Positions 18,520-53,327 of a stretch of 64,000 nucleotides of DNA are shown piece by piece. This DNA comes from Setoptus koraiensis (Eukaryota > Animalia > Arthropoda): positions 17,856,001-17,920,000 of the forward strand of contig CM106585.1 of the NCBI GenBank assembly GCA_048013815.1, in the 5' to 3' direction. Below the pieces are notes generated by a model. It saw only the letters and a program-made list of their open reading frames with translations, had not been told where the DNA came from and did not search any database. The position numbers and the translations under genes are program-made. Every line of letters starts with the position of its first letter. Position 1 is the stretch's first letter.

Positions 18520-19826
18520 TTGGTTCTCCTCGGCGATATCTGGCTGATTAGCGACAGGGAGCTCGCCAGTCTGCCTGCGTACTGTTGCGAATTGCTGCAG
18601 TGATCGGCCCGACACTGGGGCCCCACCAAAAATGTTACAGCCCGATCCAACCAACTGAGGCATACTGCGATATTATGCGATTTTCTCTCTGCTCGCATTT
18701 GGGTACTCACCTTGTGCGGCTTTACCATCTCTCGTGCTAAATAAATCTTGCTGCAAATAATGTGAATTCTTTAAAATTGAATTAAACTCAGTCGTGACAG
18801 AAAGTCACGAATCTGTTTTCAGTTTGCAAGTCGTAAGTAGATTGGGCTCGATAGTGTGACATTCCGCTACTCTCACCGAATGGGTGGCTTCTGTATCGTT
18901 GAACAACAAGCGACACGCTGAGGTTGCCGCGGTCTATGTTCTGAGATCATTCCACAAGAATTGAGGCATATTCAGTAAAGTTCATTCGCGCAAGAACACC
19001 GAGCGGAAGAGGAACAAAGGAGACACACTATCAGACGCCCTAGAGAACAAAGGCCTTTCGAGTACGATCTCGATCTCGATTCGCTTCGCCAAATTCACGT
19101 TGCAACCATCATAATGATGGCATCATTTTGTTTTCATTCGGCTGCTTGTTCCATGCTGAGCGAGCAAGATTACAAGCTCGCCTGCCATGATAAAAGCGTT
19201 TTTTTCCTGGTGTGCTCGTCACCTGTTGAATTGAATTTGCGTATTGAGCGGACTTAGGAATGAGTTCAATAAGTGCAGTTAGTCTTGTAGAAGGAAATAA
19301 ATACAAGAAACTTAAAACTCTGGGTTTCCGATCTATCATCAAAAGAAGCAGGCAAAGAAGATTTATATTTTGTTTCGAGGGGCGTTAAAATTATCAAACA
19401 CCCTTTATATCCGGTGTGATAGCACTGTTTATCACTCACGAACGGAAGATTTCCAGAGCACAGTGATAACTCGTCTACAACGGTGTGATTTTCGTTAGAG
19501 GAGACCATGTAAGCTTGTTGTCGTGCATACTAACCAACCTGAAGCCCAACGTACCGCAATAAATCTTCGGGCTGATCGTTGTTGCGAGCAAGGGTTGATC
19601 AAGCTTTTACTTGCAGTTGATCGGGCAACAGTTTCGATAGAAAAAAATATAACAATTTTCAGTCTGAGAGTGCGATAGTTGCCAACTGAAAAGTATCTTA
19701 TTACCATTGCAGGCATTTAGAACAGCGTCTCAGCCCTGAAAACAAGCAAGTAGAGAGTGGATTGGTTTGTTGTTGAGCAGACTTTTGGATAGATCCGTAG
19801 ACAGAAGACTTTCGACATCCGAAAAG
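18520..19826 (+). pseudogene. Collinear decayed helicase filling the SPH5-SPH6 spacer
   Basis: In order: DIWLISDRE, GFTISRAK, PSGRGTKET (Walker A relic), YKKLKTLGFRSII (cf. YNKLKGVGFKPVM), PEAQRTAI (cf. FEDQRTII), AVDRATVSIEKNITIFSLRVR (cf. TVDAYQGRDKNYIIVSLVR), LPTEKYLITIAG, VDRRLSTSEK|M. Confidence 0.75.
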
Positions 19827-20846
19827 ATGGCTTTCTCACTTTTGCAGAAACTTCTATTTGGCGCAACGTGTCTAACATTGGCAATATTAGTTTTGACACC
19901 CGATGAACAAATTGCAACAAGTGCTGCAGAGCATCTCGGGCGAACGCACAGGACGAAATATGGCGATATTGTGTTTGACAAGGCGAAAAAACATATCAAA
20001 TCACCAGTTGCTCAGGAATTGGACCCATGTTATTGGTATGGTAAGTTATGTAATCTTGATCCCAGGTGTGGTGTAAACCCGAATCCAGTTGAGATAGAAA
20101 ATAGAGTTATCGGAGGGAAGCAGCCACGGGCGCCAGGGGAGTTTCCGTGGTTAGCGTTTTTAGGAACACCTACGGTGCCTGATAACTATGATGGAAACTA
20201 CGAAATTAAATGTGGTGCCACGCTCATATATGATAATGTTGTCCTGACAAATAAAGGGTGCCAAGTTAACAAAAAATACCGAGTCATTTTCGGCATGTAT
20301 GATATATCTGATCAGGAGAATACTTGGTGGAAACAAGTGAGAAGCATCATAGAGAATGTAGAACACCCGGATGTAGATGCACGATTGCTCAGGCTGAATG
20401 CACCCGTGGAATTTAATAGTTATATTATACCTGCTTGTTTGCCACCATATATAGGACGAGCAAATAGTAGTGAGTTATCCGAGGACACACAAGTCCATGT
20501 TCCTGGCTGGGGAGCTTACCAAATCGACGAAAACGGTGATGTAAAATATCCGAAAAAATTAAGATATGCCGTGATGACAATCAAGGGAGAGCAATTCTGT
20601 AATGATCTCAACCCTGAGATCTACGACTATAATCATGAAGGATATTTTTGCACACATACCCCTTCACCTTCGCAAGGTAATAAATCAGCATGCGATCGTG
20701 ATTTTGGCGGACCAGCCTTAGTTTTCAGAAATAATCGGTGGGAAGTAAATGGCATAGTAAGTAGGGGAGAGTGCAATTATGCAACTGTTTTTGTGAGGGT
20801 GGCGAGATTATTAGAATGGATTGAGCAGTTTACGTACTCATCATGA
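19827..20846 (+). CDS. Secreted serine protease homologue SPH6 (predicted inactive)
   Basis: Same leader; ENR|VIGG; His->G (TNKGC); DARLL; Ser195->F (RDFGGP). Confidence 0.9.
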   Translation: MAFSLLQKLLFGATCLTLAILVLTPDEQIATSAAEHLGRTHRTKYGDIVFDKAKKHIKSPVAQELDPCYWYGKLCNLDPRCGVNPNPVEIENRVIGGKQPRAPGEFPWLAFLGTPTVPDNYDGNYEIKCGATLIYDNVVLTNKGCQVNKKYRVIFGMYDISDQENTWWKQVRSIIENVEHPDVDARLLRLNAPVEFNSYIIPACLPPYIGRANSSELSEDTQVHVPGWGAYQIDENGDVKYPKKLRYAVMTIKGEQFCNDLNPEIYDYNHEGYFCTHTPSPSQGNKSACDRDFGGPALVFRNNRWEVNGIVSRGECNYATVFVRVARLLEWIEQFTYSS

Positions 20847-21749: not shown

Positions 21750-24104
21750 ATGGATCCCACAACAAATGCAATTCTTCTGTCATTTCGGCCAAACATTCTG
21801 ATCAATCAATCCAACGGGGAAATAGAGCAATTGCAATTCGATGACTGCGAAGCGAACTCAATCGACCTCGAGACACTGGAGCCCATTCTCAAGTCAGCCC
21901 CGAATCTCAGATTACTCAAACTTACAAATCGGAATGGAGAGAACCTTGTCAAAAGAATAGGGCCCGATGCTCACTACATCATCACAGACAATTGTCCGAA
22001 ATTGACCAGTCTCGACGTGTCTGGTGTCTCGATCGCTCCAACTGAGCTCTCTTCGATTATAAAGAAATGTAATCAAATAAAAACACTGAAAGTATCTGAA
22101 ACTAAATTGGATGATCCGGAAGATCTGAAAGTTCTCAGACGTGCCGGCTATACAGACAGACGTATACAAATCACTTTGGCAGCAGAAAGTGGAGCCGAAA
22201 CATCGAAAGAGGAAACTCAATTGACGGATGAACTGTCATCCCTTCATGGCTGTGATTGGCTTAAAAGAGACCTTAGTGACTTTGATCAAACAGTGACAGA
22301 AATAGAATGGGGTGATGTTTCGAATGGATGTTACAAAGATTGCATCGCGTCAATGAAAATAGATGAATCGTTCCTTCAAGATTTAGACAAACACTCCGAG
22401 TTGGAATTGCTTCAATGCAATCGAGTTGGCGAGGCAATATGGTCAGAAGTTTGTTGGTTCTATCGTTGCGATCATCCAAGTTCTAGCGGCCATCTCTGCG
22501 TTGTATTCAAGAATGTACCAGACAACTTCACAACATATTACATGCATAACGTATCGAAGCGACCTGAATGTATATTCAAATTAACTAATCTCAAGCTTCA
22601 CAGAATACATCTAAAAAAGAGAGATACTCTGAATGCACTTGAACGAATTTCTTTTGACTATCTGTTGCGTTCAATTATTCTTGCAAAAGGAGATAAATTC
22701 AATACGTTAGGAAGAAGAAACACATTGATATCTGCATCGATAGACAAGGCGATGTTAGACAATGATCTTAGTCCGCTCAATGGTGATCAGATTAAGGCAA
22801 TCAGAAACTCATTGTGCAGTAGAATCAGTCTAATCATGGGACCTCCTGGTACAGGCAAGACTTACACTTCAGCCTTGTTGGCTCTCAAATTATTCAAGAC
22901 GAGAATCTCTAGAAACTCTAAGATACTTATTTGTGCATCAAGTGATGCAGCCATCGATAGCATCGCAGATTTGATCCATGAAAACGGGCAGCTCACACTG
23001 GTTAAGTTCGGTGATGGGATCAATTCGAAACCCTATTGCCTGCATGTGGCTCTACGAAGCATGGCAGATCACGGCGAACAATGTAGCGAAGAACTGTGGG
23101 AGGGTCTCAAGAGGATCATTCTGAAGGAGAGGCAGGTGATTTGTTGCACTTGTAATAATATTCCTGATTTGATCTCATACGGTCCCTTCATATTTGATTC
23201 TGTGATTCTCGATGATTGCTATCAGACCGATCTGACTGAAGGCCTGCTAGTTCTGCAAACATTGCCAAGACGTATTGTGCTTGTGGGTGAAGACTATCGA
23301 CCGATTGAAGGAACTCTCCACAGCAAAGTCATAGGTGCAGGTTTCAAGCCGTCCAAGTTATATAAGCAATACCGAATGCATCCAGATATGGCATTTTTTC
23401 GTACAGAATTATTTCTTGATCAAGGTGTGATGACAGACGGCATCTACTCAAGCGACAGGCAATGGACAGGCAGAAAAGGCGAATCTCCATTCCCCAGCAC
23501 CGACAGGCCCATTTATTTTCACTGCCACAATTCGGAGGAAAGCTCGAGAGATGGAGGGATGTCATGGATCAATGAAGGAGAAGTTGTCCATGTTGTGGCC
23601 ACAATCCAAGTTTTACTCTCGAGAGGTGTCAAGAGCAGTGAGATTGGGGTAATAACTTTTTTTGAGGATCAAAGGAATATCATCAGAGACCGAACGATGT
23701 CAATAGACTCCAAGGGAGAGATGAGCAAAAGGGACAGCTCAGCCGATCATATTGATTGTGGGATTGATTTGGATCAAAAGATGAGTCCAAATGACAAAAT
23801 TATTATAGACGATGTCATAGATGTGGACACTGTTGACGCTTTCCGAAATCGCGACAAAAACTACATCATCGTGTCATTTGTTAGATCAAAAGAGTGCTCT
23901 GATTTCATCACTAAGCTGAATGTTCGGAATGTGGTGCTAACTCGAGCCAAGTACGGTCTCATTTTCATTGGCAACGCGGTCGCTTTATCCAGCAGTCCCC
24001 TGCTAAAATCGTTTATAAAAACTTGTTCCGATTGGGGCCTGCTTTACTCAGAATTGTTATCGAAAAAGTCTCAGCCTGTCAAATTAGCTAAACTCATGAA
24101 GTGA
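21750..24104 (+). CDS. LRR-like N-terminus + UPF1-like helicase with degenerate ATPase motifs (784 aa); close paralogue of 1633-4029
   Basis: GPPGTGKT, DDCYQ (23211-23225), VGED, QYRMHPDM, TFFEDQ, TVDAFRNRD and LTRAKYG in one ORF. Confidence 0.9.
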   Translation: MDPTTNAILLSFRPNILINQSNGEIEQLQFDDCEANSIDLETLEPILKSAPNLRLLKLTNRNGENLVKRIGPDAHYIITDNCPKLTSLDVSGVSIAPTELSSIIKKCNQIKTLKVSETKLDDPEDLKVLRRAGYTDRRIQITLAAESGAETSKEETQLTDELSSLHGCDWLKRDLSDFDQTVTEIEWGDVSNGCYKDCIASMKIDESFLQDLDKHSELELLQCNRVGEAIWSEVCWFYRCDHPSSSGHLCVVFKNVPDNFTTYYMHNVSKRPECIFKLTNLKLHRIHLKKRDTLNALERISFDYLLRSIILAKGDKFNTLGRRNTLISASIDKAMLDNDLSPLNGDQIKAIRNSLCSRISLIMGPPGTGKTYTSALLALKLFKTRISRNSKILICASSDAAIDSIADLIHENGQLTLVKFGDGINSKPYCLHVALRSMADHGEQCSEELWEGLKRIILKERQVICCTCNNIPDLISYGPFIFDSVILDDCYQTDLTEGLLVLQTLPRRIVLVGEDYRPIEGTLHSKVIGAGFKPSKLYKQYRMHPDMAFFRTELFLDQGVMTDGIYSSDRQWTGRKGESPFPSTDRPIYFHCHNSEESSRDGGMSWINEGEVVHVVATIQVLLSRGVKSSEIGVITFFEDQRNIIRDRTMSIDSKGEMSKRDSSADHIDCGIDLDQKMSPNDKIIIDDVIDVDTVDAFRNRDKNYIIVSFVRSKECSDFITKLNVRNVVLTRAKYGLIFIGNAVALSSSPLLKSFIKTCSDWGLLYSELLSKKSQPVKLAKLMK

Positions 24105-24316: not shown

Positions 24317-25719
24317 GTGTGCGTTGATTCAAATATAATCATCTTGTTGTTCTTTCGGCTAACTTCGGACCCATATTATAGCCGAGTTGAGAATCATCTT
24401 GACTTCAGACTAGATGATGACTACTGTGGCTTCAGGGCGAAATATCATCGTTATGTCGAATCCACTCGTCTCTGTCTTGTTGAAAACCAAATATCAGAGG
24501 GGGAAGTTCAGTTGAGTTCTAAATTATCATTCCAAAATGGTTGCCTGACCCTTGATTGAGGAACGCCAATGGGAAGAGAAAGAGCTAGAATGCAATCGTG
24601 CTGCCGCCACATGTCATAATCGAATGTATGCCAACTATTGGGCTGAAATCAACAAATATGAACTCGGCTACTAATAATTAGTGACTAATTTACTCATGAT
24701 AATTAAAAAATTTCGCCCAGTTGGAGTCGTTTGAAAAAGATTGGCATGTCGAAACTATGTGGTGATGTGTATCGCCAGACCATGTTGCAGTCAATGTTGT
24801 GGGCTAAAGCTCCTTCAAAAGGAAGCAGCCAACAAAATTCTCAATGCAATCGAACAAGTATGATTATGGGACAATCAGGCACAGGTAAAACCTTCACATC
24901 GGCTACATTGGCATAACAAATATTTCGAACACGACAATCAAAAAACGCAAACATGCTCATTTGTCCAACAGGTAAATAAAGCTGTAGATAATGTTGCTGA
25001 CAAGATCAGAGGGCAGGGGCAATTGAGTGTGGTCAGAAAAAGTTCTGAGTGCGACATACGCATTCGAAAACTCCTCTTGATGGATATGGTCGGGATCGAT
25101 GAAAACGCTTAGACAGGACATATTAACTATTGAGTTTGGCAAGTTAAACCGTTCAGTGCGGATGCTCGATTAGTTACAAGGAAATAGAAGGAGGCTCAGA
25201 TGGAGTTTCGAAGAGCGCTTGCAAAAAAGAAATCAACGAAATAATTCAAATGTCATTTGTTGCCCATGTGGTGGCATTTCTAGATTGATTAGCAACGGAG
25301 CATATTTACTGGACTCTAGAGTACGTCATCGTGGTGCATTTATGAATGAAAGACTCCAATAGTAGAGTGATAGCTCGTCTACGACGTTGTGATCTTGAAT
25401 AGAATAGATCAAGTAGACGTTTTACACTGTTGACGCGCATGCAAACCAACCTGAAGCCCAACGTACCGTAATAAATCTTTGGGCTGATCGTTGTTGAGAG
25501 CAAGAGTTGATTGGGTTTTTACTAACAGTTGATCACGCAACGTTTTTCAGTAGAAAAAAAAAATATTGCCGCTTTCAGCCTGAGAGTGCGATAGTTGCCA
25601 ATTGAAAAATATCTTATTACCATCAGCCCTGAAAACAAGCAAGTAGAGAGTGGATTGGTTTGTTGTTGAGCAGACTTTTGGATAGATCCGTAGACAGAAG
25701 ACTTTCGACATCCGAAAAG
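24317..25719 (+). pseudogene. Decayed helicase copy leading into SPH7
   Basis: SEGEVQLSSKLSFQNG; MIMGQSGTGKTFTSATLA at ~24860; then the same C-terminal relic and leader as the other SPHs. Confidence 0.75.
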
Positions 25720-26802
25720 ATGGCTTTCTCGCTTTTGCAGAAACTTCTATTTGGCGCAACGTGTCTCTCATTGGCAGTATTAGTTTTGACACCTGATGAA
25801 CAAATTGCAACAAGTGCCGCAGAACATTTCGGACGAACGCACAGGACGGAATATGGCGATATTGAGTTTGACAAGGCGAAAAAACATATCAAATCACCAG
25901 TGGCTCGAGGGGTGCGAGGCAAAAAAAAGGGCGCGTCACATTGGCTTTCTGATGACGGTGATGCTGTCACTTGTGGTGTAAATCCGAATGCCGTTCCTGA
26001 TTTATTTGTTCCGAGTAATCCCCACACCAATATAGGCAACGAAAGAATTATGCGAGGCGACGAGGCAGCAGGGCTATTTCCTTGGCTAGTGTTTATTGGA
26101 AGTCGAATCTTTGATGGATCCTTTCGAATAAAGTGTGGTGGCACAATCATATTTAAGCAAATTGTTCTGACGGCCGCCAATTGTCTAACGAGCGATGGCA
26201 TTGTAGTCGTTGCCAACATGTTTGATATAACTAAACCATTGCAACCTTACGAACAGTTGAGAAGAATCAAAAAAGCTGTACGACACGACAAAGCGGGTGT
26301 AGCATTGCTCCTGTTGGAGGCACCATTACACTGGACGGATAATGTCAGACCCGCTTGCCTGCCGCCACGGTCAGGGGAGGGAAGCCATTTTGATCCATTC
26401 GACCTAGGAACGCAAGTCACTGTAGCAGGCTGGGGAGCTGTCGATCGCAACGCGGACGACGGACCATCCTACCCAATTACACTGAGGGCCACTGTTGTGT
26501 CAATCATGGATGAACAATTTTGCCTTGATAATCTCAACAATGGCACTATAAAATTGTATGATCATTCAGTAAATTTTTGTTCACATCAATCGTCCAAGCA
26601 TCCGGTGAATGCACCGGTTTTTGCCTGCGAGGGTGATTTAGGAGGACCGGCGTTATTTGTCAGGAACGGTCGGTGGGAAATTAAGGGCATAATCACTGCG
26701 GCGCGGTGCAAAGGCCCAATCGTTTATGCGAGGGTGAATATTTTATTGGACTGGATACAAGATTTTGTCGTATCCCTGGATCGACAGACAGTCTCTCAGT
26801 AG
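25720..26802 (+). CDS. Secreted serine protease homologue SPH7 (all three catalytic residues lost)
   Basis: Same leader; NER|IMRG; His->N (TAANC); Asp->G (AGVALL); Ser195->L (GDLGGP). Confidence 0.9.
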   Translation: MAFSLLQKLLFGATCLSLAVLVLTPDEQIATSAAEHFGRTHRTEYGDIEFDKAKKHIKSPVARGVRGKKKGASHWLSDDGDAVTCGVNPNAVPDLFVPSNPHTNIGNERIMRGDEAAGLFPWLVFIGSRIFDGSFRIKCGGTIIFKQIVLTAANCLTSDGIVVVANMFDITKPLQPYEQLRRIKKAVRHDKAGVALLLLEAPLHWTDNVRPACLPPRSGEGSHFDPFDLGTQVTVAGWGAVDRNADDGPSYPITLRATVVSIMDEQFCLDNLNNGTIKLYDHSVNFCSHQSSKHPVNAPVFACEGDLGGPALFVRNGRWEIKGIITAARCKGPIVYARVNILLDWIQDFVVSLDRQTVSQ

Positions 26803-26839
26803 AGCCATAGTTTTCGGTTGTATATTTTATGAGGAGAAG

Positions 26840-27700
26840 AATCATCGTCGATCGATTCTCTATAGAAAAACAGTTGGAATCGTTGCCCGATGCCACCCTG
26901 TGATGCAACTTCAACTCTTATATCGAGCCCGATCGTTGATGCCATAGATGAGACCACATGTATAACTAAAATTAGCAAGCTATATACTCTAAATCAAAGT
27001 TATACAACTGTTGCGGGAATTCTAAACATTTCACACACCATTTTGTTGTGAAGGGGCTGTCCCACCAAACTACTTCCCGGATCAAGAGATTAAGCTCTTG
27101 CATCTAGTTTTATTGGCGATAGAAAATGATCAAATAAGACGCTGACCTCACGAAGATTGGAAACGCATTTGCCCTACTTAACTGTCCGTTGGAGAATTTG
27201 TTCTGTTCAAAGACTGTTCCACAAGAGGAACAGTTATTCACACACAACTGTTGTCAGAGAATGTCATACGAAATGTTTCGGTTAGCTCTAGCTTAACTAC
27301 TGTCGACGAAATGAATCATTCGGATTGCATCCACCTCAGCTCTTTGGGTACGGTATCCCGATAGAGATGCTTCTGTCGATGTGCCCACAATTGATACTCA
27401 CTACAGGGTCGTGAGAGAAACTATGTTGTTTTTCATCTGTTGGTTCAAGAGATTGTCCTGCTTGTAACTGTTTCGATTGGAGTATGTTGATTGGAGCGCT
27501 CAATCGAGCTAAATACGGTCTCAATAGAGATCGACGCTCGTAATTTCCCTGCGTTATAACATATTCGGAAAGGCATTGGCTTTATCGAGCGATCTATTTG
27601 TTGAACATGCTGATCGTAAACTGTTCCAATAGAGGCCTGTTGTACTAGAAATTGTAGTCATAAGAATCTTGATTAGTAACTTTAGATGAGTTATTGCTAG
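26840..27700 (+). pseudogene. Two consecutive decayed helicase C-terminal fragments
   Basis: ILYRKTVGIVARCHPVMQLQLLYR and IGNAFALLNCP (~27150); then QGRERNYVVF, LNRAKYGL and GKALALSS (~27360-27600). Confidence 0.7.
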
Positions 27701-28105
27701 AGGCTAATGTATTTTATCTTTTCAATCTGTGAGTCACTGATAAATAAATTCCAGTGATCATATTCATAAACGCGTCCCACTAAACTATCCGATTCTAGTT
27801 GTATTACATAACATACATTCAACAATAACCACGGATCAAATGATGACATTCACGCTTGCTCATTCTGAAGCGATTGACGAGCAAATTATCTCTCATCGAT
27901 TACATGATGTTTACAAAAGTGCGACTCCATTGTTGTCGTTTATCCTTCTGCAGGCCGCTCTTTTTAAACGTGACAGTAATACGAATCGACTCACGCTTAG
28001 ATGACTTGAGTCTTTCGGATTAAGTTTTTTGAGTGGGATAACTACGCATCCGTTCTGACTATAGCGGCAGCCACTTAGTGACGACGATTGTCTATTCCTT
28101 AGCTC

Positions 28106-30835
28106 ATGTTTTGTTTCAGTTCCATCAGACAGAATTTACACTTATTGTCATTGCATAGGCTATATTTCAACTCTTATCGAAATATCATTAGTATAATGGT
28201 GTTCGAAAAAAGGACTTGTTGGCTAGACCTGCTGCCCACAGAACTTCTGCTAATGATTTTGCGACACCTCGAAGACTATAGCGATCGTTATCATTTATCC
28301 TTGTTGTCAGACCGTCTCAATAGCGTAGTATATCAGTCTTATACAGTAGAACTATACTGTAGAACAGTGGAGAATTTGTCATTCGAAGGCTTCAAAGCAA
28401 ACTCTATGGACCTAGAAACACTGGAGCCGATCCTGAAAAGTGCCTCAAGACTCAGGTCTCTTAAACTAACCAATAGAGATGGACGCAATGTTATCAGAAG
28501 AATTGGACCAGATGGTCATTTTATTATTGCAGACAATTGTTCACAATTAACAAGTTTGGACGTGTCTGAGGTATCGATAGCTCCGTCCGAGCTCGCTTCA
28601 ATAATGAAAAAGTGTGACAAATTAAGAGTGTTAAAAATGATTAATACTCGACTGGATGATCAGCAAGAGATAATTGAGCGTCGGCCGTCAATACAAATTC
28701 AAAGATATGATTCTCTCCATGTTATTGATCAGAGACGTTGGCGTGACTTTTCCCGTTCTCATGTTGGACGATATACAATTTCTAGCTCTGAAAACTACCC
28801 AAAATCGATAGAGGAGATTCGTTTGCTGGATAATCTCTCATTTTATGACGATTGGTTCGAACACGATCGCATGGAATTGTATCAAAATTTTACGGAAATC
28901 AAATGGTCCAGATCCTTTGAAGGAAGTTACGAATGTTACACAGCGATGATAAAATTAGATCAGATCGATCAATCGTTCCTTCAAAATATCAATAGATACA
29001 CTGAGTTCGAATTGTCTGAACAGGATAAATTTTGTGCAAAAGTATGGTCAGCACGGGGGTGGCTTAATCATAACTTTTATTCCGGCCCTTGTAATAATAT
29101 AGATCGCAGGTATCATCGATTCCTGCACGTCGTCTTCAAAAATAGAGGTGGTATAAACGAAACTTGGAGTTACGTTAGATCCATGCCAACTGAGGGTTTA
29201 TTCACTATATCCAATGCCACTTTCCGAAACTTACATCAAATGAAGCATGACATATGGAGAAATGGACTCAAGCGAATTGCGGATGACTATCTACTTCGTT
29301 CGATTATTCTGGCTACTGAAAATGAATTCTCGACTTTCGAACACAGAAACATCCTCAAATCTGTTTCAGTCGACGATGCATTGTTGGAGGAAGAAGATCA
29401 GCTCAATGAGAGTCAGACAGATGCAATCAAATACTCCTTGTGCCATAGGGTCAGTTTGATCATGGGCCCGCCGGGAACAGGCAAGACATTTACTTCAGCA
29501 TCTGTGGCCTTGAAAATGTTTGAAACGAGGGCCAGTGAAAATTCAAAGATACTGATTTGTGCATCGAGTAATATCGCAGTCGACATTATAGCAGACAAGA
29601 TCTATGAGCTGAACCAACTTACAAGAATGGTTGAAATGGTTAGAATCAGTTCTGAGTACAACACGAAAAAACAGGACGGATATCTCAAGCCATACTATTT
29701 GGATAGTCTTTTATCTGGACAAATCCAATTCACCGATGACAACTATGACTACGGTGATGAAAATCATAGTTGGCGTGATGAGAAGCAAACGAAGAGGGAA
29801 CGCGTAAAAGAAATAATCGATGGATCAGATATGATTTTTTGCACTTGCAATAGTATCCCGAAGTTGATGAGCTATGGGTCCTATTTATTTGATTCCGTTA
29901 TTGTTGACGAATGCAGTCAAATCAGTGTCCCAGACGGTCTGTTACTACTGCAGTTTCTGCCAAGAAGAATTGTGCTTGTGGGCGACGACAACCAGTTAGG
30001 GCCTGTGATAAAGGACGCCCTGAAGAAGAAATACAACCCCTCAAATGCTGTTCTATACAACAAACTCAAAGATGTCGGTTTCACGCCAGTCATGTTGAAT
30101 ATTCAGTACCGAATGCATCCAGAAATAGCGCAATTTCCTAACAAGCATTTCTACGGAGGAAAGATAAAGAATGGCATTCAAGCAAGCGATAGGCGATGGA
30201 CAGGCACACAAAATAAGTGTCCATTCCCCAATCCTGATAAGCCAATTTATTTTCATTGTCACTACTCAGAGGAGTGCCAACGACATGGCTCTACATCATT
30301 GAGCAATGAGGGGGAAGCCGATATTGTTCTGGCCACACTTGAAGTTCTGCTCTCTAGAGGGACACAAAGGAGTGAGATTGGAGTGATAACGCCTTACAAA
30401 GATCAGAGTAGTCTAATTGCAAAAAAGATGAATTCTAGAGATTACAAGGAAAAGTTAACTATAAAAAAGTCTCCTGACGACATCATAGAGGTGGACACTG
30501 TTGACGCCTACCAAGGTCGTGACAAAAACTACATCATTGTCTCACTGGTCAGATCAAGAAACTGTTCTGGTTTCATTGCCGATAGGAAACGACTAAATGT
30601 GACGCTAACTCGAGCCAAATACGGTCTCATAATCATTGGAAACGCATTGGCCCTATTGAACAATCCATTAATGAATGCGCTGATTATGGACTGCTCCAGT
30701 AGGGCACTGCTGTATTCGGAAATTTTATCGGAAAAGTCTCGGCCTGTCACTCTAGATGTGCTGTTGTTGAGAGACCACGATATCTCACTTGCTGTGAGCT
30801 CGCTGCTCAGAGATCTTATGAATAAGTTGACTTAG
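28106..30835 (+). CDS. F-box + LRR + UPF1-like SF1B helicase with intact motifs (909 aa; alternative ATG at 28196)
   Basis: F-box LDLLPTELLLMILRHLEDYSDRYHLSLLSDRLNSVV; LRR-like CSQLTSLDVS and CDKLRVLKM; GPPGTGKT, DECSQ, GDDNQLGP, QYRMHPEI, ITPYKDQ, TVDAYQGRD, RLNVTLTRAKYG. Confidence 0.92.
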   Translation: MFCFSSIRQNLHLLSLHRLYFNSYRNIISIMVFEKRTCWLDLLPTELLLMILRHLEDYSDRYHLSLLSDRLNSVVYQSYTVELYCRTVENLSFEGFKANSMDLETLEPILKSASRLRSLKLTNRDGRNVIRRIGPDGHFIIADNCSQLTSLDVSEVSIAPSELASIMKKCDKLRVLKMINTRLDDQQEIIERRPSIQIQRYDSLHVIDQRRWRDFSRSHVGRYTISSSENYPKSIEEIRLLDNLSFYDDWFEHDRMELYQNFTEIKWSRSFEGSYECYTAMIKLDQIDQSFLQNINRYTEFELSEQDKFCAKVWSARGWLNHNFYSGPCNNIDRRYHRFLHVVFKNRGGINETWSYVRSMPTEGLFTISNATFRNLHQMKHDIWRNGLKRIADDYLLRSIILATENEFSTFEHRNILKSVSVDDALLEEEDQLNESQTDAIKYSLCHRVSLIMGPPGTGKTFTSASVALKMFETRASENSKILICASSNIAVDIIADKIYELNQLTRMVEMVRISSEYNTKKQDGYLKPYYLDSLLSGQIQFTDDNYDYGDENHSWRDEKQTKRERVKEIIDGSDMIFCTCNSIPKLMSYGSYLFDSVIVDECSQISVPDGLLLLQFLPRRIVLVGDDNQLGPVIKDALKKKYNPSNAVLYNKLKDVGFTPVMLNIQYRMHPEIAQFPNKHFYGGKIKNGIQASDRRWTGTQNKCPFPNPDKPIYFHCHYSEECQRHGSTSLSNEGEADIVLATLEVLLSRGTQRSEIGVITPYKDQSSLIAKKMNSRDYKEKLTIKKSPDDIIEVDTVDAYQGRDKNYIIVSLVRSRNCSGFIADRKRLNVTLTRAKYGLIIIGNALALLNNPLMNALIMDCSSRALLYSEILSEKSRPVTLDVLLLRDHDISLAVSSLLRDLMNKLT

Positions 30836-31462
30836 AAACAAATGGTACGCTTGTCAGAAGGTCCGAAAAACAGTCTTGCTTGCAACGGCAGATTCTTGTG
30901 TTTTTTCCTGTTTCATTTTCTGGTCGACACTTGCATCTCCAATAACTATTCAGTTGATTCGCTGTCACATTTTTGTTGCTCTCGTTTTTGTTCGACTCTT
31001 TGTTTTGACAACTTTCATCAATACTTGTATTACCATTGTATTTTTCGTGCAGATTATTTCGACTTTCTGTGCAATTCTTACCGAGGACAACCGAAGACAA
31101 GGCGACACAATGTCTGCACAGTGAGCGCCGTCAGATGAAAAACTATTTGCGACCACCCTTTAGATCAATGTGCGAAAGATGATCATTGATACTCGTTGAT
31201 AATGACATCGTAAGCACACATCGCAACCTTACATGATTGTGTGTCACCAAGCGACTCCCGCAAAGACGATCTTGATCTACTGTAGCTAACTACAACGGAG
31301 TACTAACTATTTATTTGACCTTGTCACGATGATATTGATCGATTCAAGCTAATTTTGAAATATTTTCGCGTTTGGAGCTCGTTCCATAATTGCATCACCT
31401 TTGCACAAAAGCAGAGATTGGTTAGAGTTACTAGTGAAAACGACATCATCAAGCTCATCAGC

Positions 31463-33988
31463 ATGTTGGAGGTGCCAGTAATTGTTGGCATCGCGCTGTT
31501 GCTTTGGGCTGTGTATTACTTGTGTCGTCGCGACACTGAATCACTCGAAAAAGAGGACCCTGTATCAAATCGATCCAGCACACATGAGTACGATGACAGC
31601 AAACAGGCTAACATTGAGGTGAGCGACGATTTATTATTCGAACATTGTGAGGCGAACTCGCTCGATCTTGAAACACTTGAACCGATACTCAGACAGAGGC
31701 CAAACCTCGGGACACTTAAACTAACAAATAAATATGGTCACAATGTGATCGGAAGAATCGGACCCGATGCCCATTTTATCATAACAGACCACTGTCCAAA
31801 CTTGACCAGTCTCGACGTATCTGGAGTCTCTGTCGCTCCGTCCGAGCTCATTTCGATATTGAAAAAATGTGAAAAAATAAAAAAATTAATAATTGTTGCC
31901 ACTCAGTTTGATGATCCGGAGGAGTTGTCGCTCATCAAACGCCGGCCGTTCATACAAATCCAGCGGAATGCCGATGCTAAAACATATAGGATGCTCAAAT
32001 ATATCGTGGATAACACAAAGTCTATAGAAGAAAATCAATTGTTTGCTGAATTGTCCTTCTATGATAATTGGCTAGCAGAGGAACTTAGTAGTTCGGATCA
32101 GAAGATCTCGGAAATCCAATGGACTAAGACCTCAAGAGGGGACACTGGTGGCCACATTGCAGAATTAAAATTGAACGAAATCAATAGATCGTTCTTCAGC
32201 GATATGGACAACGATAGCGAGCTAGAATTGTCTGAATACGATAAATTGGGCGAGACAATTTGGTCAGCACGAGCTTTGCTCCATAAATCCAATCGCCAGT
32301 CTAGCGGATGCATTCATGTTATAGTCAAAAATGTCCTTAAACGAGATAAAAATTGGTATTTTGTTGAGGGAATGCCTATTGGAGGCTCTTTTAAGTTGAC
32401 CAATGCCAAACTTCGATTTTGGCAGCAAAAAAAGCATAACACAATACGAAATGGACTCAAACGCATTTCTTGGGACTATCTGCTTCGTTCGGTCATTCTG
32501 GCCAAAGGAAATGAATTTTCCACGCTTAAACGATGGAACACCCTGAGATCTGTATCAGTAGGCAAAATTAAATTAGATGACGATTCTGGTCTCAATGAGA
32601 GTCAAATGAATGCAATTAAAAATGCATTGTGCAATAGGATAAGCTTGATTATGGGACCGCCAGGCACAGGCAAGACATTTACCTCAGCATCGTTGGCTTT
32701 CCAACTATTCAAAACGAGATCCTCTAGTAACTCTAAGATACTTGTTTGCGCATCAAGTAACGCAGCGGTCGATATTATAGCGGACAGAATCGAGGAATTG
32801 GGTAAACTCAAAGTTGCGAGAATTAGTTCTTACTATAACATAAAAAAACAGAAAGGAAATTGCAGGTCATTTTATTTGAATAGTCTTTTAGACGAACGAC
32901 TCACCTCAGATGATTTGTCTGGACCCTTCAGGAAATATCGTGATCTGCTATCGCGACAATCTGTTGCCGGGCGCAAAGTAAACAATTCTAAGAAAGAGTG
33001 CGAGAAAAAAATACTCGAAGAGATCCAAGTCATTTGTTGCACTTGTGCTAGCGTTCCTAGATTGATAGGCCATGGCATAAATTTATTTGATTCCATAATA
33101 GTTGACGAGTGCAGCCAGATGACTGTCCCTGACGGTCTGTTACTATTGCAGTTTCTGCCAAGAAGAATTGTGTTTGTGGGCGACGACAATCAATTGGGGC
33201 CTGTGATAAAAGATAACCTGAGAAAGAAATACAATTTCTCCAATACTGTTCTATATAACAAACTCAAAGGTGTTGGTTTCAAGCCAGTCATGTTGAACGT
33301 TCAATACCGAATGCATCCGCAAATAGCGAAATTTCCCAGCCAGCATTTCTACCGAGGAAAAATAAAAAATGGTATAGAGCCTAACGACAGACAATGGACG
33401 GGCGAAAGAAAAAAATGTCCATTTCCCTTCCATAACAAGCCCATTTATTTCCACTGTCACACTTTCCAAGAAGACCATCTACCTTCTTCAACGTCCTGTT
33501 TCAATCTAGGAGAAATCGACATTGTCGTGAAAACCATTGAAGTTTTGCTGTCGAGAGGTTTGCAGGAGAATGACATTGGAGTAATAACTCCGTATAAAGA
33601 TCAAAGCAATTATATTACCGATCGATTATATTCAAGCGATTCATCTGGTGAGATGAAGAAAACGAAGTCTTTGGATGACATAATAGAAATCGACACTGTT
33701 GACGCTTACCAAGGCAGAGACAAGGATTACATCATCGTGTCATTGGTCAGATCAGTCATTGGAGACTATCATAGTTTTATTGCCGATCCAAAAAGACTCA
33801 ATGTGACTCTTACACGAGCTAAATACGGCCTAATTATCATTGGTAATGCATTAAATTTATTGAACAATCCCTTCATGAGTGCGTTGATTGCTGACTGTTC
33901 CAGCAGAGACCTTTTATACTCAGAAATTCTATCAGAAAAATCTCGACCGGTTACTTTAGACGAGCTCAAGTCTGGCCTGAAATGTTGA
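31463..33988 (+). CDS. N-terminal membrane anchor + LRR + UPF1-like SF1B helicase with intact motifs
   Basis: First ATG at 31463 (the track start at 31355 is TTG): MLEVPVIVGIALLLWAVYYLCRRD, then the LRR-like segment and all SF1 motifs (GPPGTGKT, DECSQ, GDDNQLGP, QYRMHPQI, TVDAYQGRD, RLNVTLTRAK). Confidence 0.9.
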   Translation: MLEVPVIVGIALLLWAVYYLCRRDTESLEKEDPVSNRSSTHEYDDSKQANIEVSDDLLFEHCEANSLDLETLEPILRQRPNLGTLKLTNKYGHNVIGRIGPDAHFIITDHCPNLTSLDVSGVSVAPSELISILKKCEKIKKLIIVATQFDDPEELSLIKRRPFIQIQRNADAKTYRMLKYIVDNTKSIEENQLFAELSFYDNWLAEELSSSDQKISEIQWTKTSRGDTGGHIAELKLNEINRSFFSDMDNDSELELSEYDKLGETIWSARALLHKSNRQSSGCIHVIVKNVLKRDKNWYFVEGMPIGGSFKLTNAKLRFWQQKKHNTIRNGLKRISWDYLLRSVILAKGNEFSTLKRWNTLRSVSVGKIKLDDDSGLNESQMNAIKNALCNRISLIMGPPGTGKTFTSASLAFQLFKTRSSSNSKILVCASSNAAVDIIADRIEELGKLKVARISSYYNIKKQKGNCRSFYLNSLLDERLTSDDLSGPFRKYRDLLSRQSVAGRKVNNSKKECEKKILEEIQVICCTCASVPRLIGHGINLFDSIIVDECSQMTVPDGLLLLQFLPRRIVFVGDDNQLGPVIKDNLRKKYNFSNTVLYNKLKGVGFKPVMLNVQYRMHPQIAKFPSQHFYRGKIKNGIEPNDRQWTGERKKCPFPFHNKPIYFHCHTFQEDHLPSSTSCFNLGEIDIVVKTIEVLLSRGLQENDIGVITPYKDQSNYITDRLYSSDSSGEMKKTKSLDDIIEIDTVDAYQGRDKDYIIVSLVRSVIGDYHSFIADPKRLNVTLTRAKYGLIIIGNALNLLNNPFMSALIADCSSRDLLYSEILSEKSRPVTLDELKSGLKC

Positions 33989-35346: not shown

Positions 35347-38300
35347 ACAGTGTAAACACGTTCGATGGAGCCAATTCGTTCTTGATTGGGCACTACTTGC
35401 GCTCTACAAGATATCCATTTGCCATTCCAAGAAGAATTCAGGAACATAAACTTTTCATGATGTTTCCCATCGAGACCTCTCGCACTGTTTGTCTCGTTCC
35501 AATAAATTCAACAGCAATCACAAGTGATGAAAGTGCGTTTTATTCGCCCAACGCTATATCTTTTTCATTCTGAATTCTCATGTTTTCCCTCGAAACATAC
35601 ATAGTGATACGGTCCGAAATTCTTATTCTTGAGTTAAATGCTCTCAGAGTTGTCCGAAATATTTAGCGAGAAATACGCTCCAACTTCAAACTTGGAAAAT
35701 AAACCCATCGCGCTATCATTCATAAAATCTGCGATCGCGTTGGTTGATGAACTGCCGTCTTGGTGTACTGAGGAGCTTCGAATGCATACTATTGCGCAAT
35801 AAAGGTCGAGGTGCTATTTTGTTGAAGAGAATCTGCAAGTTCTGGCATCTGATAGAGCCGTCTCAACATAACAGACGTCCAAATCATTGGACTAACACTC
35901 TAATGTGTGACCTCTGACCTAATAACAGTGACAATTAGCTAACTGGCATCGTGGTGACATCGCATAACAGAATGAAAACTCGCCAGTGTATTGCTCAATC
36001 ATGTCGAATATCGTTAGTCATGTCGAATGATCGCCGACACATTGTTACGAATGACAATACTTATTTCAGAGGTGATCTTCGACAATTAAATAGGAGAGAT
36101 GGCGTAAGCAATCATGTTCAGATGGCGAACGGTCCAGCATCGTTGAAGCTTCATCTTATTTGCATGCCACCACTGACTTGACCATGTTTCCATCATTCTG
36201 GCAAAATATGGGACTGGATGATTCAAATCCAAACTTACGACAATCAGGTTTGCTAACCAATACATCCGCGATGCCATTCTGAACAACTTCGAAGCCCAAT
36301 CTGGGCCCAGTAGTCGTGCTTAGAACTAACATAACGAGAACTCAGAGGAGACCTCCTGCAGTTCGGACCATGGATTCTTAGTAGATCCGTGAGCTTCGCC
36401 ATCTACATACAATACGAAATTATCCTGCTTCCTCTGGTGGGATCAGCCGAACAAGTTCGCTATTAACTCATGGCTCTCAATCTGCTGGCCCCCGTTGGAG
36501 GCAAAAAATCTCGTCCGGAACGAAAAAACCCCGCTCGAAACGAGCGATCGCCCCGCAACACTAGTCTTTGGGGCTTTTCGCGATCCAGCAGATTTTGAAC
36601 ACATGCATCCGAGGTGTGTGAGACGTCGGTTACACTCGGTATTATTTTTTGGTTTTTTCCGATTGATAGAATACTTCCAACAAAAGATAATGTAATGGAA
36701 GAACAAAGAAATACAAATATTGCATGACTGCAATATTTGTAAATGGCATGGTTCTCCATAGCGCGCGGCGCCCTCTACAACACCGGAAAAACCAGAGATA
36801 TCACTCAAACTAGGCGAATACAGTTTTCTGAGCTTAGGTTGACAATAATTAACAATTATAAAATTCTCATTCAAATTTCTAATTTAAAATCCATTTAGAT
36901 GCTCTGCAGTGTGTGACATAATTGTTGCGAAGGTGCAGAAGTCATCAAAAGGGCAGACATGTTTCTGTAATGATGTTGTTGAATGATAGATGAAGTTCAT
37001 CTGATGAACTCAACTGGGCCGAACGAGTTCATGCAAGCTAAAGTGTGTTGGCATAGCGGGGATGCTCGCTTCTAGCTTCATTTTAACCGATTTATCACAA
37101 GAATAGCTCCCAGTTCGGCCCCATCCATAGCTGGGGCCCATGAGACGAGTCGGTGCGGGATTCAACCGAGCTCTTTTTCTGCAGCCAACAACCGATGGCT
37201 CGGTCTGTGATGAGGTACCTGTGCGTGGCCAAACAAGGATGGGCACGCAGGTAGATTATAGAAGGCGCCATCTATGCATGTTGAGCAGCACCCCACCGGT
37301 GTGTGGGTGTAAATCAGATCAGTGGGGGGCTTTGAGAGATAAAAATCGCCCCTCGTGGGGCAAATGACAGAAGAAATAGAGTGCGTTCTGATTGTCCGTT
37401 TAAGCGCTGAGAATGATTTGGGATTGTCACATCTAAAGTGATACTTTGGATGTGTTTGCACCAGGAAGTGAGAGTGCCAAATTCAAAAATAGACACACAG
37501 AGAGCGAGAGATTTGTGCGACGATAGCCGCTCGCTTACGTAATACGCTCGCTAATACTTAAATATACGTCAAACGCTAAGTAAAAATGGTCGTAAATCGC
37601 TGATCGCGCGTCAATGGGTACAACTGGCGCCGGTCATGTCGACGGGAAGTAGTTTGATGATGGTAGCCATTACACTGTGGCAGTGCGTGCAGCGGCAGCG
37701 ACAGAGTGGGAGTAACGGTACAGCAAAAAGACTGTTTGACACGAGCAACAACTGAGCAACAACCCAACAACCCAACAACTCAACAACAACAACCGAACAA
37801 CAACCGAGCAACAACCCGACAACGGCCACCGAAAATCGAGCTGCAGTTGCAGTTGGATGTGGCTGTTATGTAACTGGCAGCATAACTGGCAATCTATTGT
37901 GAGTTTGGCCGCCAAAATTAGTCTTGTCATTGGGTCGGCAACACGGGAAACAACGGCGACGTTGTGGCACTTGAATAGTCAGCAGTTTTTAGCTGGCACG
38001 CATAGGTTCGTTGCGCGTATCTGCACTTAAAATCTCTTCTCTCTCTCTCTCTCTCTCTTTCTCTCGTTATACAACCAAAACACTGTCTATAGAGGCGCCG
38101 TGTGGATGGTAGCGTGTGTCGTGCATTGTGCTAACGGTCCCACAAACAACATTTCTGCGCGCCACTTCTAATGCCGATATAATTGGAGCAGGCACACGAG
38201 CAGTTCGGGATTATGTAAAAGAGCGATAGATGAATTTTGGCCCCTAAACTCCAGCCAGTTATCTAATTCTGCCACCAGGAGCAGTGCTACTAATAGCTGG

Positions 38301-39690
38301 CGCAGTGAATGAAGTTGCCACTATTGCAGCGCCCATCCGCCGGCCAACAATCATTTGCACGTGCCGCGGGCACGTGCTTCCCTGCAGCTCGTTGCAACAA
38401 CGTGCTGCTCGTCGTCGTCGCTGTCGTCGGCGTAGTTGTCGCTGTTTTTGTTGGTGTTGGAGTTGTTGTTGGCGTTGTTGTTGTTGCTGCTGCTGCTGTT
38501 GTTGTCGCTGTTGTCGAGGAGAGCGAGGTCGCCATCGATGCGAGGCCGCCTAACGACGACGCCGAATTATGTAACTGCCGGCTGGCGAAACAGCCAGAGA
38601 TTACGCTGGTGCAAAAGGAGAGTCGTCATTTTTTTCATCATCATTCTCGACCCGTGCTCATTTCGTGTTTTCTTCGTCGCCCGTGAGGCCTATAAAGCGC
38701 GCTAATCAATTTTGACACGGCCCGCTGGATTTGCAATATTTGTCTGAGTGAGTGTGTGTGTTGGTTTATCACTTAACAATTTGCCAGACAAATACTACGA
38801 AATAAACGAAGCCAAGTGCTGCAAATGTCAGATCCTCCATAGGGTCGGCATGGCAGCGTAGACGGCGCGCCGAGCAGCATATTTTAGCAATGGCTGCCTC
38901 GCAAGATACTGCTGGCCACTAATTAGTGTTCGGCTGTTGTGCTGCAAACAAGCTTCTGGCCACTTTTATCACATACATATCTATACATATATAAGAGCCA
39001 ACACACACTGATCAAATGGGACACTTGTCAGATTGACGATGGAGCCCAATCCAGTTGAACGCTCATCCGGGCCGAAGATGCAATTTGAGCAAATCGAGCA
39101 AATCGAGGTACTGCAAACAGAGCACATTCGTTGACCAGCAGCAAATCAGCTCGCTATGCGCCAGCACCAAATATCTAATATATATTTATAATATACACAC
39201 ATATATAGATATATTATAAATATATATTGGATATTTTGTGTAATCCGTTTAGTTGGACATGGCAACACTCTGAGAGCCAATCGCATACATATGCAAATTT
39301 GAAGTATTCTCTTGGTGGCGACACACTTCACTTCCGCCGCTCGGTCCATTGTTTTAGCGGGCCGTCGCATCGTAAGCAGTTGCTGTAAACAACATTTGCG
39401 AGTCGCCTCACTAACCCAAAACCGGCCCGTCTCTTTTCAAAACATCACCGTGCAAACAATCACCGAGCCCAAAATCAAGCTCGCCAGATGTCGCCAAACG
39501 AGCTATCCACTGGCAGCGGCCACAGGCTAGACTGATGGGCCGCTGGCACGCATACTAACATGCTGTCAGAAGTAACGGAATTGTCTGACAAGTTGGTTAT
39601 GGCACAATTGCTCTGACAGCGCCACACTAGCACCGCCAACCTGTCCATATGGAGACAGGCTTGCCAATGACTTGTTGTTGTTATTATCGC

Positions 39691-39784
<94 letters not shown>

Positions 39785-39785
39785 G
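39691..39785. repeat. (GTT)n microsatellite
   Basis: About 31 perfect GTT units. Confidence 0.97.
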
Positions 39786-42700
39786 CGCAGACAAGATAGG
39801 ACGGCGAAAAGAGTGGCCGTGGCGGGCAAACATCGCGCTTGTTTGTGTCTGTCGGCTCGATGCAGCCATGCGAGCGCGCCGACCATCAAGAATTCTGTCT
39901 AGCTTGGCCTTGCCAGTTATTCGATTATAACGAGAAAATATAAGCTCGTTACGGTCGACAACAATGGCCATTCTGCCCTTCATTGTTGACTCTTGTTTGG
40001 GGCCAGCAGAGCGCGGGGCCCCGGCGCGAGGCTCCAATGAAAAGAGTTCGCGCACAAAGTCATTTACGAGGGGCCAGACACACAAATTGTGTGTGTGTGT
40101 GTGCGTGTTTTGGTTTGAGCTGAACGACGACGACGAATAGAGTCCGTCCGGGACGGGCCCCGAAAATGCAAATAAATATCCCCTGTGGTGGACATTCATA
40201 CAGCGCGTATCATTCATTCATATATTCATTTATTTATTTTCTCACATCCGTCTACGTGTGTATTATGCAACCAATGTGCGGCTTTGCTGTGTATCACTGT
40301 GCGGCTATCATCGGGGGGCTGGCTCGAATCGGGGGCCCCAAATTGGAATGGTTGCCGCAGATGATCACAGATGATTATTTCGAGAGAAGATTTATCTATT
40401 TTTTACACAAATTCTCGCTGCGAAATAAGTCATCATAAGTGATTTTGTTTAGGGGGGCCCCGCTAAAAAGCGATTCAAACTTGTGAGAACACATTGTGCC
40501 AGTGGCACTGGCATCGCGAGCGGGCGATGATTACTGCCGCCGTCGCCGCCGCTGCTGATGCGTTCGGCACGGGGGAGCCCGGTTGGCCGGTTGTTGTGGC
40601 TGGCGCGCAGGCAAGAAATGAGATAATAAGTAACATGCCACAAAAAACGACAAAGAGAGAAAGATACACAGCGCACAGGGAATAATGAGAAGGGGCTCCT
40701 TGAAACGGAGCCACGTGGCCGTGTTTGCTCTTCTCTTCGCCCGTGTGTGTGTGTGTATTTATATATTTTGCTAGACCGACGGCGCGGATATTTGCTCTGC
40801 TGCGGCGCCTCACTTATAGGGCCTCCGGGCGGCGGGCTCGGCGCGGACCGCCGGCGTGAAGCCGCACATGCCGTGGGCCCGCCGGCAGCCCCATATCCGA
40901 TTTGGCCGATTGCTTTGGCGGATGGCCATTTCCGAGTGGCGCTAGCGGTCCGAGTGGGAGCGGTCCAAGTTAGCGCGGACCAAGTTAGCGCGGTCCAAGT
41001 GCGGGGCCCGAGCGGCAGCCGCAGCGACTAGACGGCGCGCCTAGAACAACAAAACAAGCAACAAAACCGCCAGCAACTGGGGCCCGTCATCTCAATCATC
41101 TGATATCATCACGGTTGACTCGGCTCACAAGGGCTCTGTGTGTGTGTGTTTTTTGTTATTTGCGGCCCCAGTGGCGCAATCGCCGGCAATGGTTGCCCAG
41201 TGGATTGAACGCCGGCACGAGTAATAGTCACGCTCGTCAGCAGTGTGTGTGTGCCCCAGTGTGCGCCAGTATATGCAAATGACAGCGTGCTGCGTTGTTT
41301 GTCGGCCGTCATGTCAAAATGGCCGTCATTGTCCTCGACGCGCTCCATTATACACGCCGGGCTCCGTTGCAAGTTGGGGCCCCACACAAACCAGCGGTAC
41401 GCGCGGGCCCCAGCACAAACCAGTGAACAGAAAATCTGCCGCTCGGCAACCCGCTGCAAGCGCCCGTGAATGAGCGCCGGAGCCGCTTGATGGGGCCCGC
41501 CTGCGCGTGCCGATATATCGCTGGAATATCGCTGGAATATTGCTGGTGTATCGCCGGAATATTGCTGGTGTATTGCTGATATATTGCTGATATATCAGCG
41601 CTGCTGCATGTCGCTGTATCGCTCCGGTGCTGTGTCGCTATATTTGCGAGCTGGTGGCCCGTTAAGTTTGGCAATAAATATCGTCGGTGCGTCGTCGCGC
41701 TTGTCGCCACACACTCGCCACTGTGGGGCGCCATAACTAGCTAAAACTGTGCAACTATGGAAATAGTTATTATATCCATCTCAAGTGATGACATCAATTA
41801 TATTCGCCCGACTTAACCGATAATCACTGCCGTCGCTGCGACAACAACAACAACGGCCACTGCACAACACTGAGCGCCCCATTATTTGTTGTCTGGCCAT
41901 ATAATTAAATTATTTCCAGCGCTCTAGTCGGCGTAGCCGCCGTCGGGGCTGTCGGTGCCGTAGCCGGTGTCGGTGGTGCGGCTGGCCCGGCCCAATCCGT
42001 CGGCTTGGATTACGTAACTTGTGACTGCGACCCGTCGGGCCGAAACAATGCCAGCCACTGTTTATTCAATTACTCATCCTCTCGACGGGCTGTGCTCGAG
42101 AGCCGCGCCGCTGCTGACTTGTTGATGCGCCGGCCCGTCTCTTACGACGCGCATTTGGCATGTGTTGCGGGCGTCGGGCCGGTGCGCCGCTGACCATCCC
42201 GTATCGAGTATATTCGTGCCATATTATGTAACATTGTCTCACAGCGCACAAAACGTTATGCGTGTGTTATGAGTGGTCGCTTACCATTTGAGGGTAGGGG
42301 GGCCATTTGAGCCCGGCGATAATATCAAACAAGAGAGTTTCAGGAATGGTAATTTGGGCTCACGTCGGCCGCTCCAACTGGCAATGGAGTTGGCGCAGTT
42401 CGAGAGGTCGAGCCGTTTTAAAAGTGCCCCCGTCGGAGTTGCAATAGTTGCATTTTAATTAGTTCATTACGGTGCGTCCGTTACGTGGCCACCAATTGCG
42501 ATGAGAGCGAGCGAGAGAGAGAGGGAAAATTCATTATTTGCGTTTAACCAAAGCAAACAATGGCTCTGTTTCATTGCCATGACGTGTACTTTAATGTTGC
42601 GCAATAACGACCACCACTCACCGACGCGGCTAATAAAGGCGAGTTTCGCCTCTGGCCTAATTGACACTCGCAACAACAACAACAGCAACAGCAACGACAA

Positions 42701-44940: not shown

Positions 44941-45017
44941 TCACAGAGGGCGCACTAACTCACAGAGGGCGCACTAACTCACGGAGGGCGCACTAACTCA
45001 TAGGGGGCGCACTAACG
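44941..45017. repeat. 19-bp tandem minisatellite (CACAGAGGGCGCACTAACT) x4
   Basis: Four consecutive near-identical units. Confidence 0.9.
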
Positions 45018-48445: not shown

Positions 48446-48516
48446 GAATTGGCCGCTCGCCTCGAATTGGCCGCTCGCCTCGAATTGGCCGCTCGCCTCG
48501 AATTGGCCGCTCGCCG
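48446..48516. repeat. 18-bp tandem repeat (CGAATTGGCCGCTCGCCT) x4
   Basis: Four consecutive units, no spacers. Confidence 0.9.
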
Positions 48517-53266: not shown

Positions 53267-53270
53267 ACAC

Positions 53271-53327
<57 letters not shown>

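Follow-up and report, generated by a model that had tools for sequence, protein, structure and literature searches.

What is encoded at a locus where one reading frame seems to join an F-box to a helicase of the UPF1 type, and is it a working gene? The question is raised by positions 28106-30835 of a 64,000-nucleotide stretch of the genome of the eriophyoid mite Setoptus koraiensis (assembly GCA_048013815.1, contig CM106585.1, positions 17,856,001 to 17,920,000, forward strand), here called the window, to which all coordinates below refer. The interval is a single open reading frame (ORF) without an internal stop, and from the N- to the C-terminus it encodes an F-box, a short block of leucine-rich repeats (LRRs) and a complete UPF1-type helicase core. 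A preliminary description of this DNA had reported these three parts in one uninterrupted frame, and the architecture proved real by ORF, Pfam, motif and fold data. On our reading the gene is genuine, is kept by selection and belongs to a mite family that is specific to its lineage. Its parts are as follows.

28106-30835, plus strand: whole ORF, 909 codons plus stop
28196-28198, plus strand: second in-frame ATG (Met31), read from the sequence
28226-28336, plus strand: F-box, residues 41-77 (LPTELLLMILRHL..., then ...LLSDRLNSVV), from Pfam and a language-model atlas
28367-28720, plus strand: LRR block, residues 88-205, from the C..L..L.L pattern, conservation among paralogues and a ratio of nonsynonymous to synonymous substitution (dN/dS) of 0.19
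28802-30766, plus strand: UPF1-type helicase core, residues 233-887, from an AlphaFold2 model, fold alignment and Foldseek
29465-29488, plus strand: motif I (Walker A) GPPGTGKT, residues 454-461, from alignment to UPF1 and a motif scan
29897-29920, plus strand: motif II (Walker B) VIVDECSQ, residues 598-605, aligned to UPF1 LIDESTQ
30596-30616, plus strand: motif VI NVTLTRA with the arginine finger, residues 831-837, from alignment to UPF1 and a motif scan

The uninterrupted frame is consistent with an intronless gene. An in-frame TAG lies just upstream, at 28100-28102. Of the two candidate starts, Met31 has A at -3 and G at +4, Met1 C and T at the same places; on this initiation context Met31 is the more likely start, and the F-box is retained with either.

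The C-terminal half is recognised by the Pfam models AAA_11 (E 2.6e-35) and AAA_12 (E 3.4e-54), and helicase motifs Q, I, Ia, II, III, IV, V, Va and VI are all present. The motifs of helicase superfamily 1B (SF1B) correspond one-to-one with those of human UPF1: GPPGTGKT (motif I), CASSN, DECSQ (II), GDDNQLGP (III), QYRMH (IV), TPYKDQ, DAYQGR and NVTLTRA (VI). Human UPF1 is also the best match among the sequences of solved structures (236 bits, against 150 for SEN1, 94 for IGHMBP2 and 79 for ZNFX1). From a 97-row alignment AlphaFold2 produced a model that is confident after residue 200, with a mean predicted local distance difference test (pLDDT) of 76, a predicted template-modelling score of 0.76 and pLDDT values of 70-98 in the helicase part. 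Residues 203-857 of the model, which are residues 233-887 of the ORF, superpose on human UPF1 295-914 with a Z of 31.3 over 570 aligned residues, the best fold match obtained, and Foldseek gives the helicase model an E of 3e-45. The core contains stalk helices, a 1B beta-barrel, RecA1 with the 1C insertion, and RecA2; by fold alignment of the model, residues 233-430, between the LRRs and the motor, are the UPF1-type stalk and 1B barrel. The place of the cysteine- and histidine-rich (CH) zinc domain of UPF1 is occupied by the F-box/LRR head, which comprises the N-terminal 230 residues, and the Pfam scan gave no match to the CH family PF09416 even at E values up to 1. The SQ-rich tail (serine-glutamine) is likewise absent, the protein ending 22 residues past the helicase core.

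The helicase had been described as UPF1-like with all catalytic motifs, and as distinct from the UvrD-type motor of the F-box helicase FBH1. Both statements are upheld by sequence and fold alike: the Pfam UvrD match (27.5 bits) covers residues 433-502 only, that is the Walker A stretch alone, and UvrD ranks 50th among the fold matches, with a Z of 19.2 against 31.3 for UPF1. In a quick tree the mite proteins form a separate clade with 99% support. The backbone support, which bears on where this clade joins the UPF1-like helicases, is 46. The designation 'UPF1-like' is established; a descent from UPF1 proper is not.

The gene stands in a same-strand tandem array of the mite genome, in which four paralogous helicases are interleaved with trypsin homologues. 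The three other helicases of the array are listed here.

31463-33988, plus strand: sister paralogue with an N-terminal hydrophobic anchor (MLEVPVIVGIALLLWAVYYLC) instead of the F-box; same LRR block, intact helicase
21750-24104, plus strand: paralogue starting in register with residue 58, within the F-box; LRR block kept, motifs II, III and Va degenerate
1633-4029, plus strand: paralogue of the same kind as 21750-24104 and 87% identical to it

The four copies differ in their N-termini; from the LRR block through the 1B region and the motor to a C-terminal motif they have the same parts. The pair 1633/21750 lacks motif III and carries DDCxQ and FRNR substitutions. Further helicase-family sequences without a full ORF lie at about 8608-9814 and 15419-15883; they match RecA1 and RecA2 segments of the intact copies and are remnants of further duplications.

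How secure is the head? In a scan of the whole protein, residues 41-77 match F-box-like (PF12937) at 22.3 bits (E 1.1e-4, cut-off 24.3) and F-box (PF00646) at 16.8 bits (cut-off 20.5). When the N-terminal 90 residues are scanned alone, both models pass, at 27.5 bits (E 2.6e-6) and 22.8 bits (E 8.1e-5), over 36 of the 47 profile positions. The preliminary claim of an F-box thus stands for the N-terminal fragment and falls short in the whole-protein scan. If the match were fortuitous, owed to an N-terminal helix rich in leucine, and the head an LRR domain only, one would understand why the whole-protein scores stay under the gathering cut-offs, why a phmmer search with residues 31-215 against PDB sequences returns weak matches to LRR regions only (a weak one to the LRRs of TIR1 among them), and why AlphaFold2 gives the head no confident fold (pLDDT 32 for residues 31-430 predicted without an alignment). 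Yet the two models agree on the same 36 residues, these have the canonical position, N-terminal and directly ahead of the LRRs, and in the language-model atlas the nearest clusters to residues 31-215 are F-box families (F-box, TIR1/COI1 F-box and FBXL15-LRR, at 0.92), which together make a chance match highly improbable.

The LRR block comprises about 3-4 repeats of the form C..L..L.L and is highly conserved in all four array paralogues. In the copy at 28106 it gives weak Pfam matches at residues 88-189, to LRR_NXF1-5 (21.2 bits) and LRR_At5g56370 (19.9 bits), both below their cut-offs. With LRR_NXF1-5 the corresponding block of paralogue 21750 scores 32.8 bits, above the cut-off of 30.5. The repeats had been called FBXL-type, and judged by these matches the label is likely.

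Among the four array paralogues the whole F-box is found in the 28106 copy only. The N-termini of 1633 and 21750 match its second half above shuffled sequences in an in-register permutation test (p 0.0015 and 0.025, respectively). No trace of the first half was found upstream of either, and a BLASTP comparison between the F-box region and the N-termini of the paralogues gave no match. A MAFFT alignment had hinted at an F-box remnant upstream of the anchored paralogue at 31463-33988 as well; this candidate was rejected by the permutation test (p ~0.8). The second half of the F-box, lying in register at the start of 1633 and 21750, points to an F-box older than their split, as opposed to a string that arose by chance in a single copy. 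Together with the tree, the in-register matches suggest an F-box older than the four copies that was afterwards truncated or replaced. As the sister is anchored and the frames of the two others open partway through the F-box, the conserved unit is the LRR block plus the helicase; the F-box counts as one among several exchangeable heads on this unit and is dispensable for the retention of a gene in the array.

Selection was estimated over the LRR and helicase parts. Between the two intact copies, 28106 and its sister 31463, dN/dS is 0.22 overall, with 0.19 in the LRR block, 0.26 in the 1B region, 0.31 in RecA1 and 0.11 in RecA2, so purifying selection acts on the LRR block and the helicase. The pair 1633/21750 gives values of 0.88-0.93 in the 1B region and RecA2. 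The latter pair is the starting point for a different view of the gene, in which the family turns over fast, the F-box of this copy is a relic in decay and the protein works as a helicase only, or in which the whole gene is a young, untranscribed duplicate heading to the state of its neighbours. This pair indeed combines degenerate motifs with high ratios and has no first F-box half, the array also contains helicase fragments, the whole-protein scan gives the F-box marginal scores, and the sequencing runs covering the locus are genomic and lend it no expression support. Against decay, no stop interrupts the 909 codons at a genomic G+C of about 40%, the motor motifs are intact without exception, the ratio to the sister copy is 0.22, and the F-box is still matched by two independent Pfam models over most of their length. 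On balance we consider a relic, or a duplicate of this kind, unlikely.

Relatives of the whole protein found by a full-length search are generic UPF1-like helicases that cover its motor half only, and none of the 120 relatives listed carries F-box families PF00646 or PF12937. A homologue search limited to residues 25-430 found nothing, nor did one with residues 31-215 alone, even at E values up to 10. An exhaustive HMMER search of representatives yielded 30,956 helicase matches, among which only two proteins resemble the family. These, P0121 and P0122, come from a single Logan sample (SRR33593474), and neither has an F-box. P0121 has a membrane anchor and a degenerate motor, P0122 is headless with an intact motor. 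These two and the three other array paralogues have the same middle domain, helicase and C-terminal motif as the 28106 copy and form one clade with it (99% support), but in all five the first F-box half is missing. At its N-terminus each has a membrane anchor (31463-33988 and P0121), a truncated F-box (21750 and 1633) or no head (P0122). Three of them, 1633, 21750 and P0121, have degenerate motor motifs. The shared C-terminal motif, LLYSE-I/L-LSEKSRPV-T/K-L, is specific to the family and follows the core (residues 868-883 of the 28106 copy, window 30707-30754); it occurs in all copies of the window and in both proteins of the other sample, and by this conservation may be a docking motif. Contig depth is 2-6 fold higher over parts of the helicase, which implies several more copies in the genome that are at least 80% alike.

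The combination itself was not met with elsewhere. A simple F-box pattern is absent from the 270 helicases retrieved, the product of the gene has no database record with either a Met1 or a Met31 start, and no atlas cluster of at least 50 members unites F-box, LRR and UPF1-type domains. We found no literature description of an F-box combined with a UPF1-type helicase, and the eriophyoid genome papers do not mention the family. The preliminary description had not recognised the architecture in any characterised protein and had named a widespread, annotated occurrence as grounds for refuting the idea; none of these searches indicates one. The architecture is apparently new to the literature, and the databases searched do not contain it, its parts being of known kinds (F-box proteins, UPF1-like helicases and the precedent of FBH1).

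What could such a protein do? F-box proteins choose what the SKP1-CUL1-F-box (SCF) ubiquitin ligase destroys, and an F-box for docking joined to a nucleic-acid motor may make an SCF substrate receptor that rides on RNA (or DNA), the likeliest of the readings, which we regard as evenly balanced between right and wrong. The F-box would dock the protein on SKP1-CUL1-RBX1, and the helicase core would bind single-stranded RNA (or DNA) and translocate 5'-3'. The LRR block would either bind some common partner or control the motor in the way that the motor of UPF1 is controlled by its CH domain. Whatever proteins the helicase encounters along the nucleic acid would then be handed to the ubiquitin-conjugating enzyme (E2) for ubiquitination, or the helicase would itself be modified; on RNA, this would parallel what SCF-FBH1 does to RAD51. 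In the sister copies, with the head swapped for a membrane anchor or lost, the same LRR-helicase unit would be redirected. With FBH1 as a precedent on DNA, an SCF adaptor function on RNA is plausible by analogy. Mite SKP1 is not encoded within the 64-kb window.

Several observations weigh against a receptor of this kind. The sequencing runs that match the locus have flat depth over intergenic DNA (26600-32500, 5901 letters), which identifies them as genomic DNA, and expression support is lacking from them. In the whole-protein scan both F-box models stay under the Pfam cut-offs, F-box-like by about 2 bits. AlphaFold2 places helices where those of the three-helix F-box fold are expected, but with pLDDT below 50 over the first 200 residues in both predictions. 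Three of the four array copies do without a full F-box, and the estimates of selection cover the LRR block and the helicase. Finally, dS between the intact paralogues is about 1.4, which is saturated and leaves room for a recent relaxation.

The F-box could also bind SKP1 for the helicase's own regulation, either through SCF auto-ubiquitination that sets its level or in a cullin-free SKP1 complex, and the protein would then act as an LRR-guided RNA helicase. F-box proteins with non-SCF roles are established, and the unit kept across the paralogues is LRR plus helicase with interchangeable heads. Moreover, FBH1 is itself ubiquitylated and its activity thereby changed (PMC3616717). Sequence does not separate self-regulation from a receptor for other substrates; we hold it to be unlikely.

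A substrate receptor on RNA can be placed in a wider and rather doubtful scheme. Here the array would be a modular surveillance family, an LRR block and UPF1-type motor wired by exchangeable heads (an F-box to SCF ubiquitination, an anchor to tethering, no head to a decoy), and the F-box copy would be a translocating ubiquitin-ligase receptor for the ribonucleoproteins of viruses or transposons, which it would tag. The UPF1 helicase family polices RNA quality and viral RNA. Eriophyoid mites have tiny, intron-poor genomes, and in one of them a clear AGO2 or R2D2 homologue was not found (PMC7738191). 

The array offers natural side-by-side controls, the same core with an F-box, with an anchor, or headless with a dead motor, so that the roles of the modules are directly testable. 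If the gene were silent, or its F-box did not bind SKP1, it would be merely one more lineage-specific domain shuffle.

Of eight trypsin-like ORFs examined in the window, seven are trypsin homologues and the eighth (8608-9477) is a helicase fragment.

4495-5733, 6634-7878, 10619-11722, 13718-14809, 17468-18490, 19767-20846 and 25660-26802: trypsin-family genes, in tandem

Five of the seven begin with almost the same signal-peptide leader; that of 6634 is a variant, and 4495 lacks one. In those catalytic motifs that can be recognised, GDxGGP has its Ser exchanged for Y, L, I or K, and TAAHC is replaced by TAAYC or TAANC; from these substitutions the proteins look like secreted, non-catalytic serine-protease homologues. 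Such neighbours, together with the plant-feeding habit of the mite and the mostly plant F-box/LRR families (TIR1/COI1 included) among the nearest atlas clusters to the head, might point to an effector delivered into plant cells, which would mimic plant F-box/LRR proteins and hijack the host SCF in the manner of bacterial F-box/LRR effectors. A signal peptide is, however, absent at either candidate start, an 880-residue helicase is unlikely as saliva cargo, and plant families dominate all F-box collections, so that the atlas neighbours carry little weight. We regard an effector as extremely unlikely.

Other features of the window lie between or beyond the helicases. At 30934-31130, between the two intact helicases, contig depth is about six times that of single-copy DNA, and 31034 is a breakpoint of several contigs; the segment is probably a dispersed repeat. 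A 16-kb block at 38000-54000 has a G+C of 0.48-0.57, against about 0.40-0.44 elsewhere, and contains no ORF of more than 200 residues. Runs of CAA/TTG are numerous in it, and it also has short tandem repeats (11-39 nucleotides). An Rfam scan gave no match anywhere in the window, this block included. Beyond it lie ordinary downstream neighbours of the array.

54710-55615, plus strand: dual-specificity phosphatase, intronless
55753-59514, minus strand: RING/PHD SCAF11-like protein, intronless
61162-63312, plus strand: PRMT-family arginine methyltransferase, intronless

Four known systems help to place the protein. It resembles FBXL proteins (the SKP2, FBXL3 and TIR1/COI1 class) in having an N-terminal F-box followed directly by what are likely cysteine-containing LRRs, and differs from them in having only about 3-4 repeats and a helicase in its C-terminal 680 residues; we know of no FBXL protein with a helicase. 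ZNFX1 is a UPF1-like helicase of antiviral signalling, and the likeness to it lies in the SF1B core (fold Z 23.9) and in the pattern of a lineage-expanded helicase with a head unrelated to nonsense-mediated decay and a proposed role in immunity. The NFX1-type zinc fingers of ZNFX1 are not found by Pfam in the mite protein, which at a sequence match of 79 bits is not a ZNFX1 member, and the functional parallel drawn in the preliminary description is an analogy only.

The closest system by motor is UPF1/RENT1/Nam7, the SF1B helicase of nonsense-mediated decay, with the same core of stalk, 1B barrel, RecA1 with 1C and RecA2 and all motifs. UPF1 carries a CH zinc domain and an SQ-rich tail where the mite protein has an F-box/LRR head and no tail. 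The CH zinc-knuckle domain of UPF1 binds UPF2. The same domain is RING-like, with reported ubiquitin-ligase (E3) activity (PMC8392595). One ubiquitin-ligase-related head would thus have been replaced by another.

The fourth system is FBH1/FBXO18, in which an F-box and an SF1 helicase likewise share one polypeptide. It is to our knowledge the sole characterised F-box helicase, and its polarity is 3'-5'. Its motor is UvrD-type SF1A, in contrast to the UPF1-type SF1B motor of the mite protein, and it has no LRRs, in contrast to the 3-4 or so described here. FBH1 functions as an SCF ligase, and the RAD51 on which it acts sits on the DNA track of the helicase (PMC12946210, PMC4148199). Because FBH1 works in this way on a track-bound substrate, and because the CH domain of UPF1 is linked to ubiquitination, the SCF reading of the mite protein is coherent; if it is true, an F-box on an intact UPF1-type motor extends the logic of FBH1, ubiquitination along a DNA track, to RNA.

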